From: Piromyces finnis finn
Taxonomy: Eukaryota; Fungi; Neocallimastigomycota
Direction of reading: 5' to 3'
DNA length: 64,000 bases
NCBI GenBank assembly: GCA_002104945.1
Contig: MCFH01000064.1
Location: 186,001 to 250,000 of the forward strand
Under the pieces are notes generated by a model. That model had not been told where the DNA came from. It saw nothing but the letters and a program-made list of their open reading frames with translations, and searched no databases. The position numbers and the translations under genes were made by a program. Positions 37,701 through 61,363 of the stretch are shown piece after piece (position 1 is the first letter of the stretch; each line of letters starts with the position of its first letter).

Positions 37701-40700
37701 CTTTTCTTTCCGAATATATAAATGATGACTTTTACAATAAAATCTGTGAATATCTTGATTGTAGGAAACCTCCAATACCTCACCCTCAAATTGACAAATT
37801 TTCCTTAAGCAATAGTTTTCTCCTTTTTACTGACAGAATCTATGTTCCTCCAAATTGTCGTCTTTCAATTCTTAAACTCTGTCACGACTCTCCTTCAGCT
37901 GGTCATTTCGGAATAAAGAAAACATCTTCTCTTATTGCTAGAGACTTCTGGTGGCCTTCTATTTCTTCTGATGTTAAAGACTACGTTCGTTCTTGTGAAG
38001 TTTGTTGTCGTTCAAAAACCTTTCGTCATAAACCTTATGGTCTTCTGAATCCTCTTGATATTGCTGAGCGTCCTTGGTCATCCATTTCAATGGATTTCAT
38101 TACAGATTTGCCTTCATCTTCTGGTTTCACTTGCATTCTTGTTGTTGTTGATCGTCTTACAAAAATGGTTCATCTCATTCCGTTCAAAAGTATTCCTTCC
38201 GCCGCCGAAACAGCCACAACCTTTATTGATAATATTTTCCGTTTTCATGGCCTACCTGAATCTATTGTCTCGGATAGAGGTTCTCAATTTACCTCTAAAT
38301 TCTTCCAATCCATCTGTTCCTCCCTTGGCATTGAACTTAAGTTGTCTACTCCATTTCATCATCAATCAAACGGTCAGACGGAGAGGGTGAACTCCGTTAT
38401 AGAACAATATTTAAGATGTTTCTCAAATTATAAAGGTTCAAATTGGAAAAGTTTTCTTAGTCTTGCAGAATTTAGTTATAACAACGTGGTCCAAGAATCA
38501 TCCAAATTTTCTCCATTCTTTTTGAATTACGGCTTTCATCCAAAATATTCACCAGTTATTCCAGACTTATCTAAAGTCCCAAGAGCAGAAGAGTTTACAA
38601 GAGATTTTAAAACTTTAATTAATACCTTAAAAGAAAATTTAAAATCTGCCATGGAAACCCAGAAGAAGCATGCTGACAAACGTAGAAAAGAAGCTCCGAA
38701 TTTTAAAGTTGGTGACAAAGTTTGGCTGGATAGTTCTTTAATTATCCACAAAGGAAATAAAAAATTTAAGCCAAGAAAACTCGGCCCATACAAAATCTTG
38801 GAAAAAATATCAAATGTTACATTTAAATTAAGTCTCCCAAAATCTATTAAGATTCATCCAGTTATTCATGTATCCAATCTCGAGAAATATGTCGAAGATA
38901 AATTTGGAAGATCTCAACCACCACCGCCACCTATTACCGTTGACAATGAAGAAGAATACGAAGTTGAAGAAATTCTGAATAAAAGAAGACATTACGGAAA
39001 AATACAATACCTGATTAAATGGAAAGGGTATTCAATCAATGAAGCTTCGTGGGAGCCTGAAGAAAATCTAAATTGCAAGGGGCTACTTAAAAAATTTAAT
39101 AGAAAGAAATAAAAAATAGTTAAAAAATTCAAATTATATTTATTATTAATATTAAAATCACAATTATTATTATTATCAAAACTTATTAATATCATTATCA
39201 ATATCAATTTTATTATTAAACAATTTATTAATATCAAATTTATCAATATTTTATTTTTAACTTTAGTAATATTAAAAAAAAAAAAAAAAAAAAAAAATGT
39301 ATTTTATTATATTAAATGTATTTTTATAATTAAGAAAATTCACTCCTTAGTTTAGTTTATTAAAAAAGAAAAACATATATTTAAATATTAAAATTCTAGA
39401 TTCGTCTGGTATCCGAATCCTGGAGGAGGACCATGTAATGAATACTAGAAATAACTAAATTGTCTTAGTGGTTAGTAGCTAAGACTTTGAGTCTGAATGA
39501 CACTAGTTCGAGACCTCATAGATACTATTTTAAAAAAATTATAATTTTATTTTATTTTATTTTATTTTTAAATTTTATTTTATATGAAGATTATTGATTG
39601 GTTAAGAATTTTAAGTTGAAAAAATTTTATAAATTAATTTAAAAAATTTTAGTATAAATACGAGTGAATTTTCCCAAATATTTTAAAGAATCGAGATTTT
39701 ATTAATAAATAATTATATTATTAAACACTAACTTATTAAGTTAAATTCTATGTGTTTTTAATGATATTTTTATAAATTAATAATTTACAGAATATTTTAA
39801 AGTGTTAATATTACTAAGTTATTTAGTAAATATTATAATTTGTTTTATTGTTAAAGACACATTTCTTTACAATTATGAGGATTATTGCTGAAGCCGTGGA
39901 CTACCGTCCTAACAGCAATCTTGCGTCTGTTTATAAAACCCTCATTAAGACTACGGGGGAGGACGCCAATACAAGCAGCAACATTAATAACAATGTTGTA
40001 GCCGCCAATAAATTGGCAAACTTGTCAATTTATAATGCCGGGATTATATCAGCGGCTGAAAAGCTAAATGCTGATACTTACCTTATGATCATTCAAAATG
40101 TGGATGAGAAGATCCTCAGAGAGATTGGTCATAGTTCCAATAGTTACCAAGTATTCAAAAAGTTGAATACAAAATACGGTAACGCCAATGCAGACATTGA
40201 ATACTGGCTAAAGAAGTTAAGAAAATTACATACAGAAGATGTAAGCAAAGTCAGTAAAACAATCGATAAAATCAAGGAAATCTTCCTTGAGATGTCTGAA
40301 TTAAAAATGTCCTTAAGTGAAAGGGAAAAACTAAAATATATGTACAATTCCCTTCCAAGAAGTGTCAAGAACCAAGTAAGTGTAACCTTAGATGAAACTT
40401 ATGATCAGCTCTATGAGAAGGTCAAAAGTTATATCAACGCCAAATCCTACTTCGAAGATTGGACCAACAACGACCAAGATGAAGATGACGAAGTTGATGA
40501 TCCAATGGATGTTGATTTTGTTAGTAGAGAAAACAAATCAACAAAGAATAAAAGCTACGGTAATAGAAGAAATATAAACAGAAGCCACCGTACCTACTGC
40601 CATATCTGTTGTGAACATGGACACTCTACCGAAATGTGTGAATACAACCAAAAGGCCAAAATGGAAAGGGACCAAAGAAAAAACAACAACAGGGCCTTTA

Positions 40701-43700
40701 ACCAAAGTAAACAAAAGAGAAATTCACAACAAGGGAGGCAAGTTCACAAGAAAAAACAACAAAAGAAATTCGAACAAGAAGTAGATTTCGTCGAAGACTA
40801 TGACGATAATGAAAATTATGGAATTAACGTAGAATTCGAAGATATCAGACCTCTGACAGAAAGAAATATCTACCTAATTGAAAAGGATGAAGTTACAGAG
40901 GAAGACACTCCTAACACAAAGGATATAGATTATGTGTATGGAGAAAATAAATACGACGAATGGTTCTATGATACTGGTGCCGCCGAACATATCGTTAATA
41001 ATAAGGACATTCTAGAGAACTTCACAGAAGAGCACATTCAACTTAGATGTGCAAATGGAACTACATGTGAATTTAGTGGTTATGGTTCATATGAGTTTAA
41101 GGTAAAAGACAAAACTTACAAGTTAGAAAAAGTTTTGTACTCAGACAAAGTTAGCAAGAATTTAATTAGTGGTGTAGGACTTGCTAAAGTTGGTTTAAGA
41201 AGCATTATAGATATTACTGATGATGGAAAAGTCAGGCTTATTTTCAAGGACTCTGAAAATAAAAATATAATGCAAACGTATTCAAATGAATTAAACCAAT
41301 TTAAAATTAAGCTCATAAACATTGATAAAAAGATAAATGAACCATTTATTGCAAAATTTGAAGATGATTTAGGTATATGGCATAAGAGATTAGGCCATTT
41401 CTACCAGAAGGATCTGAAGAAATACCTAAAACAACATAAAATTAAAGTAACTCCTTGCCTAGACTGTAAAATATCTAAAATGAAGAAGTCTCCACATAAC
41501 AAAACTGTACCCAAAGCCGGAAGAGTTCTAGAGACTATTCACTCCGATATTTCAGGCCCGTTTAATTCATCCGTCAATAATAAGAAGTATTTTATGACTA
41601 TGCTGGATGAATACTCAAGAAAACTCTGGATTTATACTCTCAAGTCAAGGTCTGAGGCACCGGACATTATTATTGAATTCCTAAAGAATGCCAATAATAC
41701 TTTTGACAAATATAAAGTCAAAACATTCAAGACAGATGGTGCAAAAGAGTATAATAGTAGTAAAGTTATAAAATATTGTAAGGAAAACGGTATATCTAAG
41801 ATAAATTCACCTCCTTACATACATGAATTAAATGGTAAAGCAGAAAGAATAAACCAAACAATTCAAAATTCTACTAAAACGCTTTTATATTGGGCTAAAT
41901 TATCTGAAGACTTTTGGAGTTTTGCTGTTAAATATTCTTGTTATATTTACAACAAAATACCACACCAAGGAAACGATAACTTAATTCCTGATGAAGTGTT
42001 TACGAACGAGGAAGCCGATCTAAAATACCTAAAGGTATTTGGATGCATATGCTACTTTAAGGACTATTCTCTTAAAAAGTCAAAATTCGCGCCTGTAACG
42101 AAATATTATAATAATAAACACACACACTCTAATGTATCAAATATATATGTATTTTTTTTTAATAATGTTTATTTATTAAATTTATTATTATAATACGACT
42201 AACTCGCTAGGTCAGTGTATTATCAAACTAAAGACGAAACAAAAAAACTAATTTTTATTAATTATTAATAAAAACACTAAAGAACTATTTTATCTTTCTT
42301 ATTCTCTCTTTTATACATGAAAATTATTTTTTTTTTTTTGTTTTTTTTAATACAATTTGATAAGTGAATTAATTACTTAATGATTGGTTATAAAAATATA
42401 ATTATGAAATTTTCATTAATCTAACCTTAATGATTTTCTAGTCTAACCCTTATCATTAGATATACCTCATTACAGCGCCTAACTCGAAGGAAGGAATATT
42501 TCTTGGGCTCAGTGAAGCACATCACTCATATATCGTCATGGAGATATGTGGTGATAAACTTAAAATCCACTATTCTAGGGAAATAGAATGCTGTGAAGAT
42601 AAGCCGGCACATTATAATTATAAAAATAAAAATATAAACGATCCGTATTTCTCTTTCAATGATTCATATAATATCAATAATTACGACAGAAAGGACCCCT
42701 CAGAATCATCAAAGAACAACAACAATACGGATACAAATTCAATCATAAATAAAGAAAATAATAACACAGAAAGGACTACTTCCAAGAAAATGGTGAATAT
42801 CCACTCCAAATATAAAGACGAAGAGATAACTACCAAAGAAAAAGAAGAAACTAATATAAGGACTAATATTAATTCCAAAATTGAAGAAAATTCAAAAAAC
42901 AATTTAAACAGTAATTTAAAAAGCGACACTCAAACCAATAACAAAAATAATAATTCAAATTCGAAATTTAATAAAAATAAATTTACAAATGACATTTTAA
43001 AAGTTTTAGAAGAAATTGCAAATGACAATTGCAATTTCGAAAAGAAAAATTACAAAATTTCTAATAATATTGACGAAAATAATAAATACCAATATCCTGT
43101 AACTCCTGGTCCTGATTACGTTTGTTATGGTAATACTCTTGCCGACAAAAACAAAAATGAAATCATTAAAAATCCTGAATATTATAAAAATTCTCCTACT
43201 GAATATTCTACCACCGAAAATATTTCCTATACCAAAAATACTGGTGAAAATACTACTGAATATCCTAATACTGATCATAGTGAAAAAAATTTTATTAATA
43301 AAAATTTTTCAAAAATTCAAATTAAGAATGAAGACATTCTATTGGATGATAAACCAAATAATCCACGTCATAATTCTAGCAAAAATTCTAACGTTACACA
43401 GGATAATTCTACCTACTCTGATAATATTCACATTGATGATACTAAAAATTTAAATTCAAAAATTTCTGATTCTCCTGATATGACACGTGATTCCCATTCT
43501 TATATTTCAGATGACAATAAATCTATGGATGATCCTGATCCAAACTTGGAAGATGAAAATGATATCATGGATGATATCATGGCCGATAAATCTGATGATT
43601 CCTACCATCCTGAAAGAAAAAGGCCTTGCAGTCCTACCTCTCTGAATAATTCCAGTACTCCTAAGAAGCACAAAAACAAATTTATAGCTACCGTTTTTAC

Positions 43701-45222
43701 TGATGCTCCCACTACGTACAAAGAAGCTATGTCTTGTACGAATTCTAAATATTGGAAAGCAGCCATTCAAGATGAATTAAATAATTTATATTCTAACAAA
43801 ATTATGTCCCTGGTTAAAAATATCCCAAAAAACAAGAATATTATATCTACCAAATGGGTTTTTGCTGTTAAAAGGGACAGCAATAATAATATTGTACGTT
43901 TTAAAGCTAGACTTGTCGCTAGAGGTTTCCGTCAAAAACAAGGTATTGATTTTGACTTAACCTATTCCCCTACATTAAATATTGACAGTCTAAAATTTAT
44001 TATTGCTATTGCTGCAAAATTTAAGTGGGATATATATCAGCTTGATATAAAAGCTGCCTACCTCAATGCTCCATTGGATACAGATATTTATACCACAATT
44101 CCGCTTGGAGATAGCAACTTTGGGGGAGGATACTGGAAGCTGAATAAAGCTCTCTATGGTTTAAAACAATCAGGAAGACAATGGAATAAAACAATAGATA
44201 AATTCCTGAAAAATAATAACTTTAAACCATTAAAATCCGAACCATGTATTTATACGTTAAAAGAAAATAAATACGTAAAATGTATAATTGGTCTATATGT
44301 AGACGACATGGTTATAATTGGAAAAACAAATACAATAGAGAGAGTAATAAGCAAAATTAAAAGTAGATTTAAAATATCAAATAGCGGCCCTATTAGTTAC
44401 ATTCTAGGAATAAAGATTGAAAAGAAAGGATCCAAATACATTATTTCCCAAGAGAATTACATTAATAATGTATTACAAAGATTTCATATGGAAAACGTAC
44501 GTAGAAGAAATACGCCATGTACAACAACCGACAAGAACACCTCAAATAATAACCAATTTGATAAAACAAAATATAAAAGTGCAATAGGTGCATTAATATA
44601 TCTGTCAAAATGTACAAGACCGGATATAGCGTTTGCAGTAAACAAAGCTGCAAGAAAATCTGAAAATCCAACAGTATCTGACTGGAATACAATTGTAAAT
44701 ATTTTCAGATACATATCTACTACCAAACATTACAAAATCGAATACAGTGGAGAAGGAAAAATACAAGGATACACTGATTCGGACTACGGAGGCGCAGAAG
44801 ACTTTAAATCTACCTCTGGAGGGATAATCCTAATGGGAAATAGCCCAATATGCTGGTTATCCAAGAAACAAACTTGTGTGGCAACATCTACCGCTGAGGC
44901 TGAGTACATTAGTACGTCCATGAATACGAAGAAAATCTTATGGATCAAAAACATGGTGGACGAAATTTTTAATTACAACAAAAATATAACTTTATTCACC
45001 GACAACAAAGCAAGCAAGAAAATAATAGAAAACGGTGAAATAAACACAAAGTTAAAACACATAAATATACACTACCACTTCATTATTGACAACATAGAAA
45101 AGAACAATATAAAAATCGAATATGTAAATACTAAAGAAATGTTAGCTGACCCTCTAACTAAAGATCTACCTGGTCCAAGAATGTTTGATTATACAAATAA
45201 GATATTCTTAAAGAAAATCTAA
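20901..45222 (+). CDS. Copia gag-pol polyprotein split by insertions: 20901-21100 + 39877-42093 + 42480-45222 = 1719 aa
   Basis: Removing each insert plus one TSD copy restores one frame (EYNMAI/MRIIAE and [15 protein letters not shown]). Motifs: [14 protein letters not shown] knuckle, [10 protein letters not shown] protease, WHKRLGH and IHSDISGP integrase, KARLVARGF and LYVDDM RT, YTDSDYG and ADPLTK RNase H. Confidence 0.92.
21111..21742. mobile_element. 632-bp non-coding TG..CA element E (probable solo LTR of another family), 4-bp TSD
   Basis: Ends TGATAA...TTATCA. GAAT is duplicated at 21107-21110 and 21743-21746. It interrupts LTR C at nucleotide 10, as shown by the intact 3' LTR (TGTAATGAATACTAG). 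Confidence 0.8.
22331..26530 (+). CDS. Chromovirus A single-ORF gag-pol (1399 aa): Gag, CCHC, PR, RT, RNase H, IN, chromodomain
   Basis: [46 protein letters not shown]; C-terminal [31 protein letters not shown]. Confidence 0.96.
26821..26884 (-). other. tRNA-derived A/B-box segment, antisense within the 3' UTR of element A
   Basis: Minus strand GGTGTGGTACAATGGTCGAGTAGTTGGCAATGAACTAGAAGGTTGCGGGTTCGAAGTCGGGG: A box TGGTACAATGG, B box GGTTCGAAGTC, tRNA spacing, no intact cloverleaf. Confidence 0.65.
28203..34331 (-). mobile_element. Ty3/gypsy chromovirus B inserted in the 5' UTR of element C
   Basis: 409-bp LTRs at 33923-34331 and 28203-28611 appear identical. TSD CTACG at 28198-28202 and 34332-34336. 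PPT TGGAGGAGGA on the minus strand. Confidence 0.97.
28855..33219 (-). CDS. Chromovirus B single-ORF gag-pol (1454 aa) with chromodomain
   Basis: [27 protein letters not shown], integrase [31 protein letters not shown]. Confidence 0.96.
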   Translation of the reverse strand: MEGQIFDNASLKDGFAGDRKYLKGFLAKIELVFLLYPERYQDEESKVIYLISRLYGNALNWAATLIDNHDPCLTNYQAFKERLKAFYGNNDAVYVANQMLRTLKQHRLGGIRGYILEFNKYSDESNWNEEAKMDAFIAGLNQEVAMKILEMFPGPRDLFSLQTIAARIDSRLATRGLFFDKNTKGPSSNSSNGSRKASTNLKEHPKKKRYFGPLSKEEKERRSKENLCVYCGSPGHQLKDCHKRRNKNSAFESLVSLQNNSTNSKKNQQDRVTSNFKLSFELDTKILIDSGSTLNLIDVDYCNDHNIPYHYEEDLPNVFGIGGSQKLFGVTPLLNLRYMDHLCRTVFYVTDLPVYPCILGLRWLKEHNPSIDFENNKLSFGSSYCLDHCMTLPSNVPEFHQETSVFSTDCNNSSSVSLPIFIDKPKSSFSNSKLSHSRNPKENRSKSVLINNESVNDPLSQETCTVMASNISLSKVDSCSPKNSFKDSNPTTKLPKELESYMDVFSESSAAQLPPHRPYDCQINLIENAKLFYGPIYPLTDEETRVLKDYIDENLKKGFIRKSKSPAGAPVLFVPKKNGELRLCQDYRELNKITIRDSYPLPLIQDMLEHLGKAKIFSKLDLRSAYNLVRIKKGDEYKTAFTCKFGHFEYLVMPFGLKNAPAVFQHFINDVLENILGIFVYSYIDDLIIFSENHKSHIKHVIEVLDRLRNAGLYAKLEKCEFFVSSIDFLGHRISSEGIHMDPNKVSAIINWPVPSSVKEVQSFIGLANYYRRFIPNFAKVAQPLHRLLRKNVKFDFSSEALDAFNTIKSLISSAPILSHPNRDLPFIVETDSSNFAIGAVLSQKSPDDKMIHPVAFYSRSLTSAERNYPIYDKELLAIVNALETWRHFLKGALTPFTIYSDHRNLLYQKKPEKMSQRLVRWALFLSEFNFKILYRSGSSNGKPDALSRRPDYMDSSLPSDAPFSVLRPENFCALICSISSLNDEILSEYVNDSFYIDICNFLENKNLPAPHPQSNKFSLSNSFLLFDSRIYVPLKCRPSVLKLCHDSPSAGHFGIRKTISLISRDFWWPSISIDVKNYIRSCEICCRSKPSRHKPYGLLQPLEISDHPWASISMDFITDLPPSDGFNTILVVVDRLTKMCHLIPFKGIPSASDTAFAFLNYIFKIHGLPSEIISDRGAQFTSKFWKSICQSLDVNVKYSSPYHHQSNGQTERVNSVVEQYLRCFSNYKGTNWINFLPLAEFSYNNAVQDSTKFSPFFLNYGYHPKYSPVIPDQTNVPRAEEFTRDFEDLMEKLKENLKKAIQVQKKYADKYRQEPPTFKTGDKVWLDSSLIIHKGNKKFNPRKLGPFRIISKISNLTYKLELPKSLKIYPIVHVSNLEPYYEDSFGRIKDPPPPIIVNEEEEYEVEEILDKRKHYGKIQYLIKWKGYPLSEASWEPESNLNCDELIKNFNNSH
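34670..39112 (+). CDS. Chromovirus C single-ORF gag-pol (1480 aa) with chromodomain
   Basis: [27 protein letters not shown], integrase [31 protein letters not shown]. Confidence 0.96.
39461..39515 (+). promoter_or_regulatory. tRNA-like Pol III A/B-box cassette in LTR U3 (also at 21764-21818 +, 28531-28584 -, 34251-34304 -)
   Basis: C: TGTCTT AGTGGTTA GTAG C TAAGA CTTTGAG TCTGA ATGAC ACTAG TTCGAGA CC. B: TGTCTT AGTGGTTA GTAA C TAAGA CCTTGGT TTGAA CTAC TCGAG TTCGAAA CC. Spacing from D-loop to T-loop is canonical. Confidence 0.6.
42094..42474 (-). mobile_element. Solo LTR of the element A family inserted in copia pol
   Basis: Reverse complement of the LTR at 26998-27369. TSD GCGCC at 42089-42093 and 42475-42479. 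Confidence 0.96.
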
Positions 45223-46517
45223 TTTGAGGGGGAGTGTGAACATTTATGGACACATAATTTTATTTATCTATATCATATATTTATTGCACACGTGACTATT
45301 TTATAAAAACATAAACATGTATTAAAAGTGTTGTAAACGTAATGTCTACGTGTTGTAGAGAAAGTTATTTTTTATTTATTTTATTTTATTTTTTATGGTC
45401 ACATGACCTTACATCTCATTATATAACTGTAATATTTACAATGTAACTTTTTCTCTTTGTTAACCTTATTAATAAAATTATTTATTAATTAAATTTATTT
45501 CACAATTTCAAATTTCTTACATAATTATATATCTAAATATATATTTTTTATTATTTATTATATACAGTTAATATCATAAATGTATTGAAATATTGAAATC
45601 CTTTTTATATTAATATTATTAATTGATGCTAATCTGTATGGATATATGTAAATCGTTTTTTAACCAGTTGAGTTTTGTTAAAATTGATTTTTATTTTAAA
45701 AACAAATTTATTTTGAACTTTACGAAAATAAATTCAATCCATTTGCAACACAAATTCATCCTATATTTTTATGTGTTATTAAACTTATGGCAAATATGCT
45801 AAAATAAGCCATTCATTAATAGATCTTGGGTATTTTTTTTTTTACCCTTCATTAATTTGGATATGACCAAAAAAACATTTAATTTACATTTTCAATTTTA
45901 AATTAATGATTTAATTAATATATACAATATTATATATTAAAGTATATTATTAGTAATTGCTTAATGTATTTAAATCAAAATTTTAATATTTATCCAATGA
46001 AAAAAGGTAAAGTATTATATTTCTTTATTATAGTATATGTAAAAATTAAAATACTTTCATATTTATTCATGTATACAATTGTTAGCATAATATCATGTAT
46101 TAATGTATTATGTATTATCAACATTCATTTATATTTAAAAAATTTGAATTTGTTTGTTGAGTGATATTCAATATATAAATATTATATTGAGTTCATATAT
46201 TTAATGTAATTTGATCTTTTATATAGATTTATTTTTAATTTTTTTTTTACCTCACTTATTATTACCTTTAGTTTTTTTTATAAAACTTTTTATATAAAAA
46301 TTAAGAAGGTAAGAATTATTAAAAAAATGAAAGATTTAGATTAATGAATAAATGTTTTATTTTATTTTGTTGTATATATATTTAAACAATATTTAAAAAT
46401 ATTTACTGTTAAAATCTATTTATTTAAAATGTAACATATTAAATAATTGAATTAATCTTTTATGAATTATATTTAAAGGTGTATTTTTCTTTTTTCTTTT
46501 TATTTTATTATTATTTC

Positions 46518-46552
<35 letters not shown>

Positions 46553-46785
46553 AATGTAGCTATATATTTATATATGTTTATATTACTTTTAATAGTGTAT
46601 TGCGTATATTATTAATCCTTATATTATCAAATTCTTTATATATAAAGTTTTAGTTTAAACAAGTTATAAAAGTAAATTTTTTTTTTCTTAAAATTTAAAC
46701 GTTTTCCACCCTGGCTAGAACAATTTTAAGGTTTGGGTGGTTCTCAGCCTCAAAATCATTATCTTCAAGGTCTTTTACATGGACC

Positions 46786-47893
46786 ATGAATGAAAATGAT
46801 TTGAATGTTGTAGCGTCCTTCACTAAGGTATATAATTTTTATAGTTATATTTATTTTTCTAGTAGATTAATAGTTATTATTATTAAAAAGAAAAAAGATA
46901 AAAAGTAAAATTATTTAAAATGAATTTGTTAAAATTAAAATTAATATTTTAACAACATTTGAAATTATTTAGAAATAAACTAGATTTGAATTTTTAGTTT
47001 ATGTAATTATGTTAATTAAATTTATTTTTATATTATTGATTTACATTGTTAATAATTTATTTATAGTGTGTTGAGGACCTCCGTTCCGGCAGTAAGAGAA
47101 ACCATCGTATTAGACGTATTCGTCACCGTGCCCAAAAGCGCTCTCGTAAAAATAGAATTACTCAACAAACTGTTGAACCAACTATTGAAAAAATTGTTGA
47201 AAAACCAATTGAAAAGGAAGTTGTACTTCCAGTTAAAAAAGTACGATATAATTTTTATATTAAGATTTTATTATAAAATTTTATTCTAACATATTGATGT
47301 TTTAAAATAAATAAATAGGAAATCTCAGAAGTTGAAATCATTGTTGCACCAACTTTAAAAAGTTCAATAAATAACAATGACAACTTTGAAAAGGTTACTG
47401 TCCCAAAGGTTAAAAATATTAACACGTAAGTTCTTTAAAAATAAGTGTTTAAGTATATATTATATAGAAAATAATTGTAAATCAATTATAATTTATTTAG
47501 AATTAAGAAGAAGGAAACTTCTAAGGTCAGAAATTCTCTTCCTTTAGTTGATCTTTGTCGTGATAGACGTCGCCGTATTTCTTCAATTAAAAAGAACTCA
47601 TCAGAAAATATCAGTAGAAATGATATTGCTTATGCACTTAAACCAAATTACTCAGTTAAAAAAACTGCTAAACAATCTTTTATGCCAACTTGGGCTAAAT
47701 TCTCTCTTTCATGGGTAAATAATAAAATTAAATGTTATAAAATGTAGTAGATTAAAAAAATTTAGATTTTATTCTAATTAAAAAAATATATAATTTAATA
47801 TAGAATAATGAAAGTAGTATTCTCGATTCTTTAAGAAACGTTAAAATTAATTCTCCTTTAAATAATTTACCATTAATTACTCTCGCCGCATAA
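46786..47893 (+). CDS. Orphan basic protein (~208 aa, 5 exons) immediately upstream of TRP2
   Basis: Exons 46786-46827, 47067-47240, 47319-47425, 47501-47714 and 47804-47893 join in frame over four GT-AG introns, two of them with a clear CTAA branch motif. Host-like codons (CGT, GCT, AAG). No recognisable domain; contains KRNHRIRRIRHRAQKRSRK. Confidence 0.75.
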
Positions 47894-47917
47894 ATAATAT
47901 AAATAAAAATAATAACA

Positions 47918-49693
47918 ATGAATGTAATATTAATAAATCTATAATGATTATATGTTTTATATATTTTAGTATTTTTTTTTCATGCATAATTTTAAATAAC
48001 AATTATTGAAATTAATAATTTATCAATATAGAATAATATTAAGCCTACATTCGATGAAATCGTTGAATTGGTAAACTCTAAGAAGGGAAACACCATCCCT
48101 GTTTACCAAGAAATGTCAGCTGATATGTTAACTCCAGTATCTGCTTATCTTAAGATTTCTAATGGTAAGAATTATTCTTTTATGTTAGAATCTATTGAAG
48201 GTGGTGAACAAATTAGCCGTTATTCATTTATTGGTGCTGGTATGTATTTTATTAAAATATAAATAATTGAATTAATACTAATAGACATTGAATTTAATTA
48301 TTAACTATTTTATAAAATAAAAGACCCATACAAGATTATTAGATCCGGAAAGGATGAAGAATTAAAGGGTGATCCACTTGTTCATATTCAAAAAGAAATG
48401 GATAATATTAAATATGTTCCTCTTCAAGGACTTCCACAATTTACTGGTTAGTATAAATATAAAATTCTTAGTAAAAATATAAGTAATAATAAATATTAAT
48501 TTAATATAAAATAAAATCAAAAAGGTGGTGCCATTGGTTACATTGCTTATGATTGCGTTCAATATTTTGAACCAAGAACAGCTTGTGAATTAAAGGATAA
48601 TATTGGTGTACCAGATATGATTATGCTTTTATGTAATACTTTGATTATATTTGATCACTTAAAGCATGTTGTTAAGGTTGTATCTCATATTAAAACTGAA
48701 GATAAGGATCTTTCAAAAGAAGAATTAAAGAAATTATATGATGAAGTTTCTTCTAAAATATTTAAGGTTATTGCTACTCTTCAAAACCCAGAAGTTCCAA
48801 TTCCAGATCAAAAACCAATTATTTTAAATCAAAAACCAGAATCAAACACTGGAAAGGAAGGTTACGAAAGATTTGTTACCGAACTTAAGCGTCATATTAT
48901 TGAAGGTGATATTATTCAAGCCGTTCCATCACAACGTATTAGTAAGAAGACTACTTTACATCCATTTAATGCTTACCGTCATTTACGTAGTATCAATCCA
49001 TCTCCATACATGTTCTATATTGACTTAAAGGAATTCCAAATTGTTGGTGCTTCTCCAGAAATGTTAGTAAAGGTTGATTCTGACAAGTATGTTCATAATC
49101 ATCCAATTGCTGGTACTAGACCACGTGGAAAGACTCCAGAAGAAGATGAAGCTTTAGCTGTTGATCTCTTATCTGATGTTAAAGAATGTGCTGAACATGT
49201 CATGCTTGTTGATCTTGGTAGAAATGATATTAACCGTATTTGTCAACCAAACACTGTTTCTGTAACTTCTTTAATGCATATTGAAAAATACAGTCATGTT
49301 ATGCATATAGTTAGTAATGTCATTGGTAAATTAAGAGATGATAAAACTAGTTATGATGCTTTCCGTTCCATTTTCCCAGCTGGAACATTATCCGGCGCAC
49401 CAAAAATTAAGGCCATGGAATTAATTTATGAACTTGAAAATGAAAGACGTGGTGTTTATGGTGGTGCTGTTGGTCACTTTGATTACTCAGGTGCTCTTGA
49501 CACTTGTATTGCTATCCGTACTATGGTATTTAAGGATGAAACCGTTTATCTCCAAGCTGGTGCTGGTATCGTTTATGATTCAGTTCCAGAAAAAGAATAC
49601 CAAGAAACTTTAAATAAATTAATGGCAAATGTTACTGCTTTAGAAAACGCTGAAAAATTTTATTATAATCAACAACAAGCTAACAAAATATAA
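47918..49693 (+). CDS. TRP2: Anthranilate synthase component I (TrpE homolog), 4 exons, ~501 aa
   Basis: Exons 47918-47923, 48032-48239, 48324-48446, 48525-49693. Motifs LTPVSAYLK, LESIEGGEQISRYSFIG, GGAIGYIAYD, NPSPYMFY, PIAGTRPRG, EHVMLVDLGRND, GTLSGAPK, QAGAGIVYDS. The 6-nt first exon is inferred. Confidence 0.94.
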
Positions 49694-49729
49694 ATAATTA
49701 GTAATAAATAAGAACAGAATATATAAAAA

Positions 49730-52117
49730 ATGACTACATTATTAATTGATAATTACGATAGTTTTACATATAATATCTATCAATATTTATGCCAATTAGG
49801 CGCTAAAGTTGAAGTTTATAGAAATGATAAGATTACTTTGGAAGAATGCATTAAAATTAATCCAAGAAATGTTGTTATTTCTCCAGGTCCAGGTCATCCA
49901 GATAACTCTTCTGGTATTTCAAAGGAAGTAATTAAGTATTTTGAAGGCAAAATTCCTATTTTTGGTGTTTGTTTAGGTGAGCAATGTATGTATTCACTTT
50001 ATGGTGGTACTGTTACCTATACTGGTGAAATTGTTCATGGTAAAACATCACCATTAACCCATGATGGTAAAGGTGTTTTCTCTGGTATTCCACAAGGTGT
50101 TGAAGTAACTCGTTATCATTCATTATCTGGTGATCCAGATACTTTACCTGATTGTTTAGAAATCACTAGTTGGACTGATAGTCGTAAGGTTATGGGTATT
50201 CGTCATAAGAAATATGTAATTGAAGGTGTTCAATTCCATCCTGAAAGTATTGCTAGTGAATATGGTAAAACTTTATTAGCAAACTTTTTAAAGTGGGAAG
50301 GTGGTACTTGGGATTCTCTTAAGATTAGAGATGATTTAATTAATCCAATCAACGAACATATTCCAAGAAATTTAAGATCTAATACTAGTCATCAAGTTTC
50401 ATTACCTTCTACTTCTGGTAAATCAGTTGAAAAGAAAGAGCAAACTATTTTAGAAAAAATTGCCGAACAAAGACGTATTGATGTATCTAAGGCTAAAGCA
50501 ATTCCAGGAAGATCTTCTTACCATCTTGAAAAGAGTATTGCTTTAGGTCTTGCCCCACCAACTATTGATTTCTATGAGAGATTAAAAAGAGGTACAAATC
50601 CAAATGATGATGTTGCTTTAATGGCCGAAGTAAAGAGAGCTTCTCCAAGTAAGGGTAATATTGATATTGTTGCTCATTCAGCTGCCCAAGCTTTAGTTTA
50701 TGCTAAAGGAGGTGCTTCTGCTATTTCAGTACTTACTGAGCCAACCTGGTTTAAAGGAAACTTAAATGATTTGCGTGATGTCAGACAAATTTTAGATAAA
50801 TTACCAGATAGACCAGCTATTTTAAGAAAAGATTTCGTTGTTGATAAATATCAAATTTTAGAAGCTAGATTGTGTGGTGCTGATACTGTTTTATTAATTG
50901 TTAAAATTTTAACAGATGAACAATTATCAGAGTTCATGGCCTTTGCTCGTACTTTATCTATGGAACCATTAGTTGAAGTCAACAATGCTGAAGAAATGGA
51001 AAGAGCTATTAAACTTGGTGCTAAGGTTATTGGTGTTAACAATAGAAATCTTCATACTTTTAATGTTGATCCAAAAACTACAACAAGTCTTGCTAATATG
51101 GTTAATGTTAATAAGGATATCATTTTATGTGCTTTAAGTGGTATTAATTCTAGAGAAGATGCTGAAAACTATATTAATGCTGGTGCTAGAGGTATTTTAG
51201 TTGGTGAAGCTTTAATGCGCGCTGAGAATACTGATAATTTCATTAAGGAATTATTAGGTAGAGTTCCATCTTCTAAAAGTAAAAAGACTGTTGATGAAAT
51301 TATAGAAGAAACATCAGGTGTTCAAAAACCACTTAAAAACAACAATACTTTAGTTAAGATATGTGGTATCAAAAATGTTGAAGATGCTATAGCAACAGCT
51401 GAAGCTGGTGCTGATTTCATTGGTCTTGTATTCTTCGAAAAATCACCAAGATGTGTTACAGTTGAAAAGGCTAAAGAAATTGTTCAAGCTCTTAATAAAT
51501 ATAGAGAAGAAAAATATGGTCCATCTTCATTAACAATTAAATGTGAAATGCCATATCCTGGTGATGCTAGTTTATCTTCTTGGTTCAATACTACTTCTAA
51601 GATCATTAACTTAACATTAGAAAAATGTAAGCCACTTGTTGTTGGTTTATTCGTTAATGAAACTTATGAATACATTAATAATATTGTTTCAGAGGTTGGC
51701 TTAGATATTGTTCAATTACATGGTAAAGAACCACTTGAATTAGCTCGTATGATTCCTGTTCCGGTTCTTAAGGCCTTAAGTATTGGACCAGAAGATACTG
51801 AAAAGGAAATCGTAGAGAATATTAGAAAAGGTAATGGTTTGAATTCAATGTTCTTACTTGATACTAAGGTTGTTAGAAGTGACATTCCAGGAGGTAATGG
51901 TGTTACTTTTAATTGGGATGCTGCTAAAGAAGTTAATAAGATTGTTCCATTCATGGTTGCTGGTGGATTAGATTCATCTAATGTTAAGAAGGCTATTGAA
52001 ATTATGCATCCATGGGCTGTTGATGTTTCAAGTGGTGTTGAAAAGGCTAAAGGTGTCAAGGACATTGAAAAGGTTAAAAAGTTTATTGATGATGTCAAAT
52101 CTGTAAAGAATATTTAA
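49730..52117 (+). CDS. trpC: Trifunctional TrpG (glutamine amidotransferase)-TrpC (IGPS)-TrpF (PRAI), intronless, 795 aa
   Basis: IDNYDSFT, SPGPGHP, GVCLGEQ, GVQFHPES (GATase). EVKRASPSKG, VLTEPTWFKG, RKDF, LVEVNN, GVNNRNL, LVGEALMR (IGPS). VKICGI, VQLHG, LLDT, AGGL, VDVSSGVE (PRAI). Confidence 0.97.
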   Translation: MTTLLIDNYDSFTYNIYQYLCQLGAKVEVYRNDKITLEECIKINPRNVVISPGPGHPDNSSGISKEVIKYFEGKIPIFGVCLGEQCMYSLYGGTVTYTGEIVHGKTSPLTHDGKGVFSGIPQGVEVTRYHSLSGDPDTLPDCLEITSWTDSRKVMGIRHKKYVIEGVQFHPESIASEYGKTLLANFLKWEGGTWDSLKIRDDLINPINEHIPRNLRSNTSHQVSLPSTSGKSVEKKEQTILEKIAEQRRIDVSKAKAIPGRSSYHLEKSIALGLAPPTIDFYERLKRGTNPNDDVALMAEVKRASPSKGNIDIVAHSAAQALVYAKGGASAISVLTEPTWFKGNLNDLRDVRQILDKLPDRPAILRKDFVVDKYQILEARLCGADTVLLIVKILTDEQLSEFMAFARTLSMEPLVEVNNAEEMERAIKLGAKVIGVNNRNLHTFNVDPKTTTSLANMVNVNKDIILCALSGINSREDAENYINAGARGILVGEALMRAENTDNFIKELLGRVPSSKSKKTVDEIIEETSGVQKPLKNNNTLVKICGIKNVEDAIATAEAGADFIGLVFFEKSPRCVTVEKAKEIVQALNKYREEKYGPSSLTIKCEMPYPGDASLSSWFNTTSKIINLTLEKCKPLVVGLFVNETYEYINNIVSEVGLDIVQLHGKEPLELARMIPVPVLKALSIGPEDTEKEIVENIRKGNGLNSMFLLDTKVVRSDIPGGNGVTFNWDAAKEVNKIVPFMVAGGLDSSNVKKAIEIMHPWAVDVSSGVEKAKGVKDIEKVKKFIDDVKSVKNI

Positions 52118-52638
52118 TTTATAAACTAAAAACAAAAAAATATAATAAAAAGTAAAAAATTGGCATAAAGTATTAAAAAATAATAATACTAAAAATAGAT
52201 GCATATAATTAAAAATTAAATAAGATGTTAAATATTAAATGTAAAATTATTAAAAAGAATTAAATTATAAAATAATCTTTAAAAACAAGTATTTATTATT
52301 GATACAATTAAAAATAATTAAAAATGTATTTTTTTTAATAAATTATTGAATAAACTTTACATATATATATATATATATAAACATTACTTCATTTTTTATT
52401 GCATTATAAGAAGGGATCTTATATACCTAAATATTTGAATATTTTCTTTATTTTTTATTAATATGTTTATTATAGAAATTAAAAAAAAATCATTATTAAC
52501 CAATCACATTTAAAGTTATATTTTTTTCAGTTTTTTTTTTAAAATTAATTTTTTTTTTTTTAAAAATAAATATTATTATTTAAATAATAATTATTTATTC
52601 TTTATTTTATTAATAAATATTAATAAAATTTATTAAAA

Positions 52639-55600
52639 ATGGCAAGAAAAAAGGGAAATAGAAAACCAGTTCAAAAAAGTGAATTTTCAGATGAAGAAGA
52701 TTTTAAAACTGGAGCTTCATTAAATCGTTGGGAAACTGCAGATGATGTTGAATTAGATTCCGAGGATGAATGTAAATTATTAAACCAATACAATTAAATT
52801 TTAATATTATCAGTAAAAATAATGTTACATTTAAATTGATAATTAATTTTCAATGTATTCCCAAATTTATCGTAGTAAATATTAATAATTTAAATTTGTT
52901 ATATATTATTTTATTGGCATAATGATTTCATTAGTTCACAAACAACGTGAAATGATTGATTTAGGAGAAGATTATAATGAAGAAAGTGAAGAAGGTATAT
53001 ATAAGGAATAATTAAAATTTAAATTAAATAAACATTATTATTATTTAAAATACATTAAAACATAAAATGTATTTTCTTATTAAGATATAAATAATATTAA
53101 TAATTATTTGTTAATTTAATAAAATTTAATAAATTAAAAAAAAAAAAAAAATTAACAGAAGAAGGAAATGATGAAGTTTTTGGTTTAGATGGTGTTTCAA
53201 GTGATGAAGATGATGAAGAAGCTGATTTGGGTATTTACAAAGTTCAAAATAATGATGATATTATTGAAAAAGAAAAATACAAAGGTAATTAAAATATTAT
53301 ATTTATACTTTTTGAATAAAAAAGTCAATTGTTTTATGAGAAATATATATATTGAGATTATAATACAATAATAACAATAATATTAACAATAACAATAATA
53401 ACAATAGAAATTGATGAAAAGGCTTGGGGTAAAAGAAGAAATACATATTATAATGCAGATGATGCAGATGCAGATGATGAAGTTGCTAAAGAAGAAGAAT
53501 ATGAAGCTATTCGTTTACAAAAAGAAAGAATGGAACAATTGGATGAAGAAGATTTCTTAGACGATAGTTTTGCAGCTCAATTATCAGGAAAATCAGGAAT
53601 TGTAAATTTTAAAATAAAAAGCAAACATATAGGATTTATATATCTAAAAAAAAACATATTTCTTAAGAAGGGGAATTTATAAAAATTAATATAAATAATT
53701 TATATATATATTTTATTTGAAATTTATTATAGGATCTTGATATAGAAAAAGAAGAAGAAAGTGAAGAAGATGAAGAACAATTAGAAATTGCAAACAAAAA
53801 TTTAAAAGCTAATATTTCAAAAATGTCTAAGGATGAACAATTATCAATAATTTTCAATCAAACTCCGGAAATGTTAGAATTGATTGAAGATTACAAGGAA
53901 AAGTTAAGTGAATTAAAAGAAAAAATTATACCAATATTAAATATGATAGAAAAAGATGAAATAAGAAATTCATTAGAAAAGAAAACTGTTAAATATCTCA
54001 AATTTAAATATCGTAAATATCTAAATCAATAATATTATTATATTTTTATATATAAACTTAATTATGAAAATAAAAAAATATATATATTAAAATTTCCCCT
54101 TTTTTCAATATTAAAATTAAAATTATATATATATATTATTTATTTTGCATTTATCAAACATTTATATTTGCTATATAAAATTTTATGCAATTTAATTAAT
54201 ATTGCTTATTCAACGATAACTCATTATTTAATTAATTTAAACAAAAACATTTTGAAAGAACTTATCTTCTCATATTTAACAAACATTTCATTTTATTTGG
54301 TTTTAAGATCATCATCTTCAGCTAATAAAATAAAGGATCATCCAGTTATTAGTACTTTAGTAGACATTAAATTAATCTTAGATAAAGTTGAAAAGGAAGT
54401 TGAAGGAAAAGAAGAAGAAAAGAAAAAGAAAAAGAAGCGTAGTCAACCAAAAGAAAAAACGATTATTGCAAAAATGATTGAAGAATTAGAAAGACAAGTA
54501 ACTGAAGGTAGACCAAAGGATGATAGTGAAGAAATTTCTAAGAAATTATTAGCAGAAGTTCATGAAGAATTTAGTAATGAAGAAGAAGAACAAGAAATTG
54601 AAGAAAATGAAGAAGAAAAGGATGAAGAAGAAGAAGAAGAAGAAACAATATCATCAATTCTATCTGGTGAAAATAAGAAAAAGAATAAGAGTGGAAAACA
54701 TGTTCAAATTTCTGAAGAAGTTCAAGAATATAGTGATAGTGATTATGAAGAAAGATTCATATCCTTAAAAACTAATGATAAAAAATCAAAGAGTAAGAAG
54801 GAAAAGAAATCTGAAGACTTTAATGAAGCTAAGATTAATGAAGATGATGATGAATTTGATGAAGGTGATAAGAAGAAGAATAGTTTAAGATTCCATGCTT
54901 CTAATATTAATAAGGTAATTATAAAATTCATTTGATATTGATTAATCATATATAATCATATATGTATAACATTATTTAAATATATATTTATTGTAATTCT
55001 TTGTAATTCATTTTTTATACAAATTTTTTAAACAATAAACATAATGATTACATAGACATTAAATAAATTATCAGGAAAGAAATCCACTGGTGATTTAGAT
55101 GTACCATATAAAAGAAAGGACAAGAAAGAAATTTCAGCAGAAGTTAAGAAGTCAAGAGAAAGTGCTGACGCTGATATATTTGATGATACCGATGATTTAG
55201 ATCTTAACGAAGGTTTAGATTTAAATAGCAACTTAAGATCAAATAAGCGTCCAAGAGAAGAAGATGAAGAAATTGATAATGATTATGTTGATGACTTTGA
55301 TGATGAAGATCTTAAATACTATGAAGATATTAACAATGCTTCTAAGGAAAAGAAGAGAATTAAGGAAGAAAACTTTAGAAAGATTAAGCAAGAATTATTA
55401 GAAGAAAGGTAATTTTACTTTAAAAAGATATTTTATAAAATGCAATTTAATTTGAGCATATATAATTTATAAAATTTATGTTCGAGTGTTAATATATATA
55501 TTTTTAAATTATTATTTCTATTATTACAGTATGATTGATGAAAATGATCTTGCTCCAGGTGAAAAGAGACACATTAATAGAACTATAGAAAAGAACCGTG

Positions 55601-60079: not shown

Positions 60080-60406
60080 ATGAGAATTGAAAGTGTATTT
60101 GGAATATTAGGTGCCATTAAATTAGCCTCTGCTGCATGTGGAGGTGCATGGAGTCAATGTGGTGGTAGTAATTTCCAAGGTGATAAGTGTTGTATGGATG
60201 GTTATAGTTGTAAAAAAGTCAATGATTGGTATTCATATTGTGAAAAATCTAATGATGCTCCAGTAGCTGCTGCTTCAAATAATTCAGAAAAGAAGGCAGC
60301 TTTTGGTGATAACGTTTGGGGTAATAATAATTCTTGGAATAACTGGGGAAATAATGGTAACAATAACAATAACGCTGCTAACACATGGGGTAATTGGGGT
60401 AATTGG

Positions 60407-60445
<39 letters not shown>

Positions 60446-61363
60446 AATAATAATAATAATCCATGGAGTAATTGGGGTAATTGGAATAACAACAACAACA
60501 ATAACAATGGTTGGAATAATTGGTTTAATGCTGGAAATACAGCTGGTAATAATCAACCAGCTCAACAAAACCCAGCCCCAGCCCCAGCCCCAGTTCAACA
60601 ACCAAATGAACAACCAGTCCAACAACCAGTCCAACAACCAGCTCAACCAACTACTAATGCCAATGCCAATGTTAAATGGCCAAAGGCTGAAAAGCATATT
60701 AAATTAGATGCTCCAATTGTTGTTAAGGCTGGTGAAACATACGATGGTCTTAAGGAAAATGGTGTTTGGACTAGTTATGGTAGAGGTGTAGATGCTGGTG
60801 ATTGTGTAGATATTGAAGGTAGTTATGCTGATGCCGTTTTCCATGTAGAAACTGGTGCTACCTTAAAGAATGTTATTCTTGGTAAAGATTCCATTGAACA
60901 TGTTCACTGTATTGGTGATGGTTGTACTATTGAAAATGTTTGGTGGGATGATGTTTGTGAAGATGCCTTATCTTTAAAGTACTCAACTAACCCAGATGCT
61001 AAATTCTACTTAATCGGTGGTGGTGCTAAAGATGGTTCAGATAAGATTGTCCAACACAATTCTGCTGGTACTGTTTATATTAAAAACTTCGATGTTAAGA
61101 ATGCTGGTAAATTATATAGATCTTGTGGTAATTGTAAGAGTGGTTACCAAAACACTAGACATGTTGTCATTGAAAATGTTAATGCCTCAAATGTTGGTGT
61201 TTTAGCTGGTATTAACAGTAACTATGGTGATACCGCTACTTTCAAGAATGTTAATGCCAATGGTGGTCCTGTTTGCTACTCTTTCACTGGTAATAATAAT
61301 GGTAGTGAACCAAAGAAGACAGGTGAACAATGTAAGGGACAAAGCAACTGTACTTGTAAATAA
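60080..61363 (+). CDS. Secreted pectate lyase family PL3 with N-terminal CBM1, intronless, 427 aa
   Basis: Signal peptide, then CBM1 CGGAWSQCGGSNFQGDKCCMDGYSCKKVNDWYSYC and an N/W/G- and P/Q-rich linker. PL3 motifs GATLKNVILG, VHCIGDGCTIENVWWDDVCEDA, DKIVQHN, GKLYRSCGNC. Confidence 0.93.

Follow-up and report, generated by a model that had tools for sequence, protein, structure and literature searches.

A conserved U-TrpE-TrpGCF gene unit with closely spaced anthranilate synthase cistrons in anaerobic gut fungi and chytrids

Introduction

Translational coupling through overlapping stop and start codons is a classical property of bacterial trp operons and was established in Escherichia coli for the trpE-trpD/G and trpB-trpA pairs. 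In the nuclear genomes of yeast and Neurospora, TRP2 and the trifunctional trpC/trp-1 genes are unlinked. Polycistronic nuclear mRNAs are nevertheless known from nematodes, kinetoplastids, green algae and some mushrooms; the fungal examples arise by read-through of independently expressed genes. Viruses of the calicivirus and influenza B type and, with an AUGA, the fungal totivirus HvV190S use termination-reinitiation, which needs an upstream motif complementary to 18S rRNA or a pseudoknot. Here, a locus of the anaerobic gut fungus Piromyces finnis is described in which three open reading frames (ORFs) follow each other head to tail on the plus strand. They encode a protein called U, the anthranilate synthase component TrpE and a TrpG-TrpC-TrpF protein (TrpGCF), and comprise 208, 501 and 795 codons, respectively, in the translation of the spliced sequence. 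The locus lies in a stretch of 64,000 nucleotides (positions 186,001 to 250,000 of contig MCFH01000064.1, assembly GCA_002104945.1) that is called the window in the following and to which all positions refer unless another sequence is named.

The locus resembles bacterial trp operons in that the anthranilate synthase subunits are adjacent, E before G, with stop and start codons that overlap (ATGA in Borealophlyctis) or are separated by a short stretch (14 nt in Spizellomyces, 36 nt in P. finnis), and the presumed benefit is the same, namely matched subunit synthesis. In contrast to these operons, it is nuclear, is interrupted by spliceosomal introns, encodes fungal-type proteins, lacks a Shine-Dalgarno mechanism and starts with the unrelated cistron U. 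TrpD, TrpB and TrpA lie outside the chytrid unit, and coupling is here inferred. Model fungi possess the same two enzymes with the same domain orders, but unlinked (as checked in Phycomyces nitens), whereas in P. finnis they are encoded 36 nt apart on one RNA contig.

There are eukaryotic precedents as well. Polycistronic loci of green algae are backed by Iso-Seq, proteomics and in vitro translation (Gallaher et al., 2021, PMC7896298). Like the fungal unit, they give rise to nuclear mRNAs with two to three ORFs, short gaps, interspecies conservation and random frame relations (PMC7896298). Their upstream ORFs are small and AUG-poor, and leaky scanning is favoured, whereas the upstream ORFs of P. 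finnis have 208 and 501 codons with 10 and 42 ATGs (PMC7896298 for the algae); the basis differs as well, the present unit being known from short-read contigs and comparative anatomy. In Agaricomycetes, polycistronic transcripts arise by read-through of genes that are also transcribed alone, and they are progressively less conserved beyond that class (Gordon et al., 2015, PMC4503453). The glpks3-glnrps7 operon of Glarea lozoyensis joins genes of one pathway, in the secondary metabolism of one species (PMC4471562). These fungal transcripts likewise carry more than one ORF, and the Glarea case also links genes of a single pathway. The chytrid unit differs from both in spacers too short for a promoter or terminator, in encoding two subunits of one enzyme of primary metabolism and in having been kept across zoosporic phyla. 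Finally, 80S reinitiation can be selected for in yeast (PMC11952965). The chytrid unit has in common with this case and with viral termination-reinitiation that the start codon of a second long ORF coincides with the stop codon of a long first ORF or follows it by at most a few tens of nucleotides, and an AUGA occurs in one chytrid as well; the viral systems rely on a defined upstream element, whereas the junctions of the chytrid unit are predicted by RNA folding to be unstructured. A literature search retrieved nothing relevant on polycistronic transcripts of Neocallimastigomycota, on linkage or fusion of chytrid anthranilate synthase genes or on anthranilate synthase encoded by polycistronic eukaryotic mRNAs.

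RNA contigs and gene structure

Four RNA runs of the same organism, originating from three studies, were aligned as short-read contigs to positions 46450-52400. In each run, a single contig of 4620-4943 nt covers U, TrpE and TrpGCF, with both spacers present and seven introns removed. The contigs start at 46645-46678 and end at 52047-52347, and the next gene, at 52639, is not joined to them. Six GT..AG introns are skipped outright; the four joints within U are GT..AG in all four runs, and its spliced ORF was checked. The seventh intron (47924-48031) was deduced from the record coordinates: between 47889 and 48032 the contigs have 34 letters, corresponding to 47890-47923, which comprise the stop codon of U, the 24-nt spacer and ATGAAT. 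Depth is approximately 0-10 in the intron and flanking intergenic bins compared to 128-435 for the contig, so that genomic DNA is not the source of its continuity. DNA and RNA do not differ at all in three of the four runs, and the fourth has four substitutions, none at a stop codon. Since the RNA contigs reproduce both stops, these are not assembly errors. Spliced contigs with the three ORFs are also found in four other assemblies of Neocallimastigomycota, namely L003 (Logan RNA), L005, L006 and L008 (JGI). A co-transcribed tricistronic RNA very probably exists, of which single molecules would span the three ORFs.

The original prediction, made from the letters of this DNA alone, had proposed a polycistronic mRNA with either reinitiation or shared-leader processing. 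The spliced contig across three ORFs agrees with the first part, and the mature contigs, which keep both spacers, give no support to shared-leader processing; reinitiation is still inferred. The predicted gene order was correct, since ORFs and Pfam domains agree on trpE, trpG, trpC and trpF lying head to tail on one strand. TrpE contains Anth_synt_I_N (PF04715, 1.4e-30) and Chorismate_bind (PF00425, 5e-93), as measured on a full-length orthologue and recovered on the window exons too. TrpGCF consists of GATase (PF00117, residues 4-187), IGPS (PF00218, 241-508) and PRAI (PF00697, 622-787), the domain set that defines the fungal trifunctional protein. Its exact 795-residue sequence had no record in a protein collection, though U of the same locus is recorded there. 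The public annotation of P. finnis may be without a correct TrpGCF model.

At the first junction, U stops with TAA at 47891-47893 and the next ATG is at 47918; at the second, TrpE stops with TAA at 49691-49693 and the next ATG is at 49730, so that the predicted coordinates and spacer lengths of 24 and 36 nt are correct. The longer spacer contains an AATAAA and further in-frame TAA codons at 49709 and 49724, giving three in-frame TAA with the TrpE stop; the earlier view that it is not a broken fusion had rested on these two extra stops, and they are indeed there. The ATG of TrpE is located on a 6-nt micro-exon (ATGAAT, 47918-47923) that belongs to the same exon as the last codons and the stop of U. 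The ORFs lie on the same strand, and the spacers are too short for a terminator and a promoter, both here (24 and 36 nt) and in ten relatives (-4 to 97 nt). The gaps around the unit are much larger, as predicted (0.5 kb or more): about 1.4 kb with 13-18% GC separates the end of a copia element at 45222 from the RNA contig start near 46645, and 521 nt separate TrpGCF from the ATG of a Sas10/Utp3 gene at 52639. GC content in the region is 25-38% in coding and 10-18% in non-coding sequence, a pattern regarded as typical of anaerobic gut fungi. The features of the locus and of its counterparts in other fungi are collected in Table 1.

Table 1. Features of the U-TrpE-TrpGCF unit in the P. finnis window and of corresponding loci in other zoosporic fungi (U-E and E-G, spacers between the ORFs).
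Feature or taxon	Sequence	Position	Strand	Details
5' leader of transcript	window	46645..46785	+	RNA contig 5' ends 46645-46678 in 4 runs
Gene U, 208 aa, 5 coding exons	window	46786..47893	+	exons 46786-46827, 47067-47240, 47319-47425, 47501-47714, 47804-47893
U-TrpE spacer, 24 nt	window	47894..47917	+	96% A+T, no ATG; retained in mature RNA
TrpE/TRP2, anthranilate synthase component I, 501 aa, 4 exons	window	47918..49693	+	exons 47918-47923, 48032-48239, 48324-48446, 48525-49693
TrpE-TrpGCF spacer, 36 nt	window	49694..49729	+	A-rich, no ATG; retained in RNA contigs, 4 runs
Trifunctional TrpG-TrpC-TrpF, 795 aa, one exon	window	49730..52117	+	Pfam GATase, IGPS, PRAI
3' untranslated region	window	52118..52347	+	RNA contig 3' ends 52047-52347
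Spizellomyces punctatus	L085			U-E 27 nt; TrpE stop, then 14 nt to TrpGCF ATG
Powellomyces hirtus	L091			U-E 38 nt, E-G 26 nt
Rhizophlyctis rosea	L092			U-E 16 nt, E-G 57 nt
Borealophlyctis nickersoniae	L088			U-E 11 nt; TrpE TGA overlaps TrpGCF ATG as ATGA (7771-7774)
Gonapodya prolifera	L087			E-G 110 nt; U-E tentatively 11 nt
Hyaloraphidium curvatum	L086			E-G 236 nt
Thoreauomyces humboldtii	L004	5857-10035		intronless stop-free frame, 1392 codons, TrpE-linker-GCF; 1344 aa in annotated model

Distribution of the gene unit

The same gene order and strand recur in at least 11 further taxa or assemblies, a recurrence that excludes a chance arrangement, and the linkage of U, TrpE and TrpGCF is real and conserved with practical certainty. 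Within the Neocallimastigomycota, the U-E and E-G spacers measure 25 and 32 nt in L003, 25 and 26 nt in L005, 25 and 65 nt in L006 and 29 and 87 nt in L008. The TrpGCF proteins of these four are 89-91% identical to that of the window over their full length and 92-98% in the GATase part. In the genome of Anaeromyces robustus, the exon structure agrees with that of P. finnis, and the spacers measure 28 and 97 nt. All spacers of Neocallimastigomycota are A-rich, and the length of the U-E spacer hardly varies among them (24-29 nt in six of them, compared to 11-38 nt in chytrids).

Beyond the anaerobic fungi, a tblastn search with U located it directly 5' of TrpE and in the same orientation in Spizellomyces and Borealophlyctis and, with a weaker match, also in Gonapodya. 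Annotated U homologues exist in P. hirtus (g02282, with TrpGCF as g02284), R. rosea (001225, with TrpE as 001226) and Gaertneriomyces (000188, with TrpE as 000187), and also in Spizellomyces 'palustris' and Nowakowskiella. U is found on the contig of TrpE in Chytridium lagenaria and in Dinochytrium, where the contig carries TrpGCF too. The apparent occurrence of TrpE and TrpGCF on one contig suggests the linkage for Polychytrium, Cladochytrium, Phlyctochytrium, Fimicolochytrium and Irineochytrium, and likewise for Dinochytrium, Entophlyctis, Quaeritorhiza and a second Gonapodya. In the S. punctatus record L085, the U homologue (3372-4188) has recognisable exons in a 2.2-kb stretch without a called gene. 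The public Borealophlyctis model (1281 aa) joins TrpE and TrpGCF and appears mis-annotated. Two rumen-type contigs, L009 (897-3986) and L010 (217-2031), encode a GATase that is 80-81% identical to TrpG of the window but continues into a different, longer C-terminal part; this is probably a different GATase-fusion paralogue, aminodeoxychorismate synthase, and both contigs were left out of the comparison.

Details of gene structure are shared as well. The ATG micro-exon and the intron behind it read ATGAAT|GT in P. finnis, ATGAGT|GT in Anaeromyces and ATGACG|GT in Spizellomyces, Rhizophlyctis and Borealophlyctis, and a 9-nt version is present in both monoblepharids (Gonapodya and Hyaloraphidium). 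Since the ATG of TrpE is on the exon with the U stop and the following intron is conserved, TrpE has no separate first exon. The position of the U intron right after the codon of the second invariant Trp is likewise conserved. In Thoreauomyces humboldtii, TrpE and TrpGCF form a single protein with a linker of about 55 residues and without a Met at the start of G. This fusion is derived, because Powellomyces, of the same family, retains two ORFs 26 nt apart. A fusion by stop loss requires that both genes were already on one transcript, and in this way Thoreauomyces supports a shared transcript.

The linkage is no general fungal property, as the genes are unlinked in P. nitens (Mucoromycota) and Chytriomyces confervae: at the loci checked in these two species, TrpE and TrpGCF are not adjacent. 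In most Mucoromycota and in Basidiobolus, the TrpE and TrpGCF matches are apparently on different contigs. The statement of the original prediction that the genes are unlinked in model fungi thus holds for P. nitens by inspection and for yeast and Neurospora as general knowledge. Its proposal of a de novo operon does not hold for this lineage, because the E-GCF linkage and the complete triplet are common to aerobic Chytridiomycota and Gonapodya and are therefore older than the anaerobic fungi; the survey of spacer length and synteny it had called for found the linkage in Neocallimastigomycota and aerobic chytrids alike. To judge from this distribution of sequences, the unit is ancestral to chytrids in the broad sense (Chytridiomycota, the monoblepharid Gonapodya and Neocallimastigomycota) and has been kept together since, the U-E-GCF arrangement of Gonapodya being more tentative.

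The first cistron

All 208 residues of U agree with those of P0123, a hypothetical protein of P. finnis. A profile search among 1.84 billion proteins yielded 19 representatives of the family, and every named one is from a chytrid. The homologues are about 200-290 aa long and share the motifs VEDL, RHRAQKR, VD.CRDRRRR and P.W..FSL.W, which are invariant in the 11 closest members (A1). Pfam gave no match at or near threshold (weak hits, E 0.004-0.09), and the search of the Atlas gave no convincing neighbour (best score 0.68). The AlphaFold model has a mean pLDDT of 59.6 and is mostly of low confidence, with one confident arginine-rich helix at residues 123-140. U is a real, chytrid-specific, mostly disordered and arginine-rich protein. 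As a lead only, the modelled helix may be compatible with RNA binding.

The upstream ORF had originally been taken for a leader, a view that does not fit a conserved protein gene with invariant motifs. A leader peptide of the bacterial trp type (about 14-30 codons, tandem Trp codons, alternative hairpins) was considered and rejected, as U has 208 residues with conserved motifs throughout. The two conserved Trp are separated by 7 residues, and how far they lie from the stop varies between taxa (29-36 codons here).

The approximately 84 nt preceding the ATG of U (46702-46785) are nearly invariant across six Neocallimastigomycota, with third-position-like variation. This stretch begins with CCACC-CTG-G, in which the CTG (46711-46713) has a Kozak-like context and is in frame with the ATG of U; Spizellomyces has AACC-GTG-G at the equivalent place. 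The peptide encoded ahead of the ATG (..LRFGW.. ..RSF.WT) matches the ATG-initiated N-termini of other chytrid U proteins. By sequence comparison, U may possess an N-terminal extension initiated at a non-AUG codon. RNA folding of this stretch gives two hairpins (z = -2.7), and the AUG of U lies within one of them. A coding exon on the minus strand was rejected as the cause of conservation, because the minus frame has no Met in Spizellomyces and the plus frame matches U N-termini.

How the unit may be expressed

The best explanation for this anatomy is a single tricistronic unit whose downstream ORFs would be translated by post-termination reinitiation, and trust and doubt in it are evenly balanced. 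One transcription unit for U-TrpE-TrpGCF would start approximately 110-140 nt 5' of the U ATG and end approximately 100-230 nt past the TrpGCF stop; after removal of seven introns, a mature RNA of about 4.8 kb with three separate ORFs would result. A ribosome terminating U at the TAA at 47891-93 would stay on the unstructured, ATG-free and A-rich spacer of 24 nt and restart at the ATG at 47918. After TrpE, it would likewise cross the 36-nt spacer to the ATG at 49730. Synthesis of both anthranilate synthase subunits, TrpE and the TrpG domain, would in this way be coupled, similar to translational coupling in bacterial trp operons.

Several observations are in line with this scheme. Stop and start either overlap (ATGA) or are separated by a short gap without AUG (U-E, 11-38 nt; E-G, 14-97 nt). 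In 22 spacers with a total of 1045 nt, no ATG occurs, compared to 8.7 expected from shuffled sequences (P<0.0005). A caveat, minor in view of the conserved N-termini, is that any in-frame ATG with no stop behind it would count as part of the downstream ORF. ATG-free spacers are as expected when ribosomes scan them. The junction regions are also predicted to be less structured than shuffled sequence. In contrast, U contains 10 and TrpE 42 ATGs, with no depletion relative to shuffles, which excludes leaky scanning. Taken with the shared exon, the derived fusion and the conservation of an arrangement that is unlinked elsewhere, the overlaps and short spacers make reinitiation on a tricistronic mRNA the most economical reading.

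A number of points weigh against reinitiation on one mRNA. Eukaryotic ribosomes normally reinitiate very poorly once they have translated an ORF of 200-500 codons. Yeast bicistrons are not translated unless selected for (PMC11952965). RNA folding of both junctions revealed no reinitiation-promoting structure; they are less structured than shuffled sequence (z +1.5 for 47803-47923 and z +1.4 for 49620-49760). In a sliding test on five transcripts of Neocallimastigomycota, synonymous sites near the junctions are barely more conserved than elsewhere (0.86-0.87 versus 0.79-0.83). The E-G spacer varies in length, from 26-97 nt to over 141 nt in L007, where it contains long A runs, and to 110-236 nt in the monoblepharids. 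The RNA evidence consists of short-read contigs alone, and separate mRNAs whose ORFs are 24-36 nt apart would overlap, so that any assembler would merge them; a search for PacBio RNA runs listed none. Contig L005 bridges about 350 nt of AT-rich sequence (6.5% GC in its core) into the upstream neighbour. Finally, each of the four runs has a second contig that merges with the main one at 49605, directly behind an AG and 125 nt ahead of the ATG of TrpGCF; its estimated depth is about 270-450 and in run X4 exceeds that of the main contig. The sequences at the loose ends (49605, 48251, 48263, 46927, 47487) were not found in the window or any fetched locus. The contig at 49605 is either an unrelated abundant transcript sharing an AT-rich 30-mer or an alternative or trans-spliced 5' exon, and its depth suggests the unrelated transcript.

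Against this background, it is about an even call, if anything tipping towards doubt, that reinitiation would be the main route to TrpE and TrpGCF protein. A bolder version, which is rather doubtful, is a true ancient eukaryotic operon with one capped mRNA that would be translated three times by efficient reinitiation, the anthranilate synthase subunits being coupled as in bacteria. U would perhaps be a required RNA-binding factor, and the E-G-C-F order perhaps a relic of an ancestral operon, frozen as the downstream genes lost their promoters.

Alternative explanations

The strongest alternative, although improbable, is that three independent mRNAs overlap. TrpE and TrpGCF would then have promoters and caps inside the preceding coding sequence, the upstream mRNAs would be polyadenylated in or just before the next ORF, and the contig would be a merger. 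Overlap and continuity look the same in short-read contigs, L005 demonstrates that a contig can extend into an adjacent gene, and genes of polycistronic transcripts are also transcribed independently in Agaricomycetes (PMC4503453). The AATAAA of the 36-nt spacer would suit such polyadenylation, ordinary 5' leaders are likewise expected to be free of ATG, and in the monoblepharids, with spacers of 110-236 nt, there might be room for a minimal promoter. However, promoters inside coding sequences would have to be retained from Piromyces to Spizellomyces, including cases with the ATGA overlap and with spacers of 11-16 nt, and yet there is hardly any extra conservation of synonymous sites at the 3' ends of U and TrpE. 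Any transcription start serving TrpE alone would be confined to the approximately 115 nt before the ATG within the shared exon, or to the last intron of U. Deep adjacency and the simple in-frame fusion of Thoreauomyces are unexpected for independent genes, which have drifted apart in other fungi.

A further and quite unlikely possibility is that one primary transcript gives rise to processed forms that are translated, either by splicing that skips U exons and leaves TrpE as the first long ORF or behind only a short one, by an alternative or trans-spliced 5' exon before TrpGCF or by cleavage and re-capping. Exon skipping would read in frame, since the end of U exon 1 (46827) and the start of the second TrpE exon (48032) are both in phase 0; with the join at 49605, TrpGCF would be preceded by an upstream ORF of just 23 codons whose end is 36 nt from the TrpGCF ATG, and rare isoforms are dropped from contigs. 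On the other side, only the seven constitutive joints are reported in any run, and Rfam, searched over 46300-52500 at E<=1, gave nothing but one irrelevant sub-threshold match (IS009). Neither the window nor any fetched locus contains the letters joined at 49605, and the estimated depth of that contig, above the main contig in X4, suggests another transcript. To our knowledge, spliced-leader trans-splicing has not been described in fungi, which counts against this explanation too. An operon resolved by spliced leaders, of the nematode or kinetoplastid type, does not fit either: the contigs keep both spacers and all ORFs, no common leader was seen in them and the junction at 49605 is at neither spacer.

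Horizontal transfer of a bacterial trp operon into anaerobic gut fungi is highly improbable. These fungi have acquired many bacterial genes, E, G, C, F is the common bacterial order and many of the fetched bacterial metagenome contigs have trpE directly 5' of trpG. However, TrpE is closest to fungal and opisthokont proteins and G-C-F is the fungal trifunctional fusion. All 120 best TrpE matches are from fungi or from Capsaspora and nucleariid-type opisthokonts (56-68% identity). TrpE is 62-68% identical to the TrpE of chytrids and other fungi, compared to 39-51% over the full length for the fetched bacterial metagenome loci. TrpGCF is 88% identical to the A. robustus protein and 50-56% to trifunctional proteins of chytrids and Mucoromycota, which provide its best matches outside the anaerobic fungi. 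The seven spliceosomal introns, some at positions common to aerobic chytrids, and the linkage in aerobic chytrids also argue against transfer. A recent bacterial transfer is ruled out by the fungal best matches, the introns and the distribution in aerobic chytrids. As the original prediction had held on the strength of the TRP2 introns and the G-C-F fusion, both enzymes are, by their closest matches, of fungal type and not recently transferred from bacteria.

An artefact or decayed fusion, in which the stops are errors, recent nonsense mutations or sites of read-through or frameshifting in a single U-TrpE-GCF or TrpE-GCF protein, might be suspected from the genuine E-G-C-F fusion of Thoreauomyces, the fused NCBI model of Borealophlyctis and the in-frame 36-nt spacer of the window, but has hardly any probability, since RNA contigs of four runs reproduce the stops, there are three in-frame TAA, the reading frames of the two ORFs differ in relatives, given E-G spacers of 26, 32, 65 and 97 nt, or in chytrids of 14 and 26 nt and an overlap of 4 nt, and the TrpGCF start Met-Thr-Thr-Leu-Leu is conserved at every locus with separate ORFs and missing only from the genuine fusion. 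Read-through and frameshift fusions are ruled out by the multiple stops and varying frame relations.

Genomic neighbourhood

Directly 5' of the unit lies a copia-type element with gag, integrase and RVT_2 (39848-45222), and further upstream an ORF of 1480 aa for a Ty3/chromovirus-type polyprotein with a chromodomain (34670-39112). Because transposable elements are directly upstream, the upstream neighbour of the unit is not conserved with Anaeromyces. The contig L005 reaches, in its positions 1-1200, 1.3 kb 5' of U into a serine-rich coding region of low complexity, whereas the other seven of eight transcript contigs begin 110-200 nt before the ATG of U. On the downstream side, the Sas10/Utp3 family gene has introns and occupies 52639-54935; the same neighbour follows TrpGCF in A. 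robustus. A 427-aa ORF at 60080-61363 of the window combines a fungal cellulose-binding module of the CBM1 type with a pectate lyase domain in one protein.

Significance

The unit is a deeply conserved three-cistron arrangement of primary metabolism with bacterial-style junctions in zoosporic fungi, of which anatomy and conservation are solid, co-transcription is likely and reinitiation is the proposed mode of translation. What sets it apart is that there is no room for promoters (11-38 nt and one ATGA overlap), that the two downstream cistrons encode the subunits of one enzyme and that the TrpE start is on the exon with the U stop. The arrangement spans fungi from the rumen with 17% GC to soil chytrids with 47-52% GC, and one lineage has turned it into a fusion protein. 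Automatic annotation mishandles such loci, as illustrated by the fused model of Borealophlyctis, the unannotated U in the fetched S. punctatus record and the lack of an exact TrpGCF product for P. finnis.

The arrangement is probably very old, as it predates the split of Neocallimastigomycota, monoblepharids and Chytridiomycota. Spizellomyces punctatus, which carries the unit, is transformable. If coupling is true, the locus would be an ancient example, provided by nature, of eukaryotic reinitiation that is efficient even behind long ORFs, and it would provide a ready design for multi-gene expression in anaerobic fungi.

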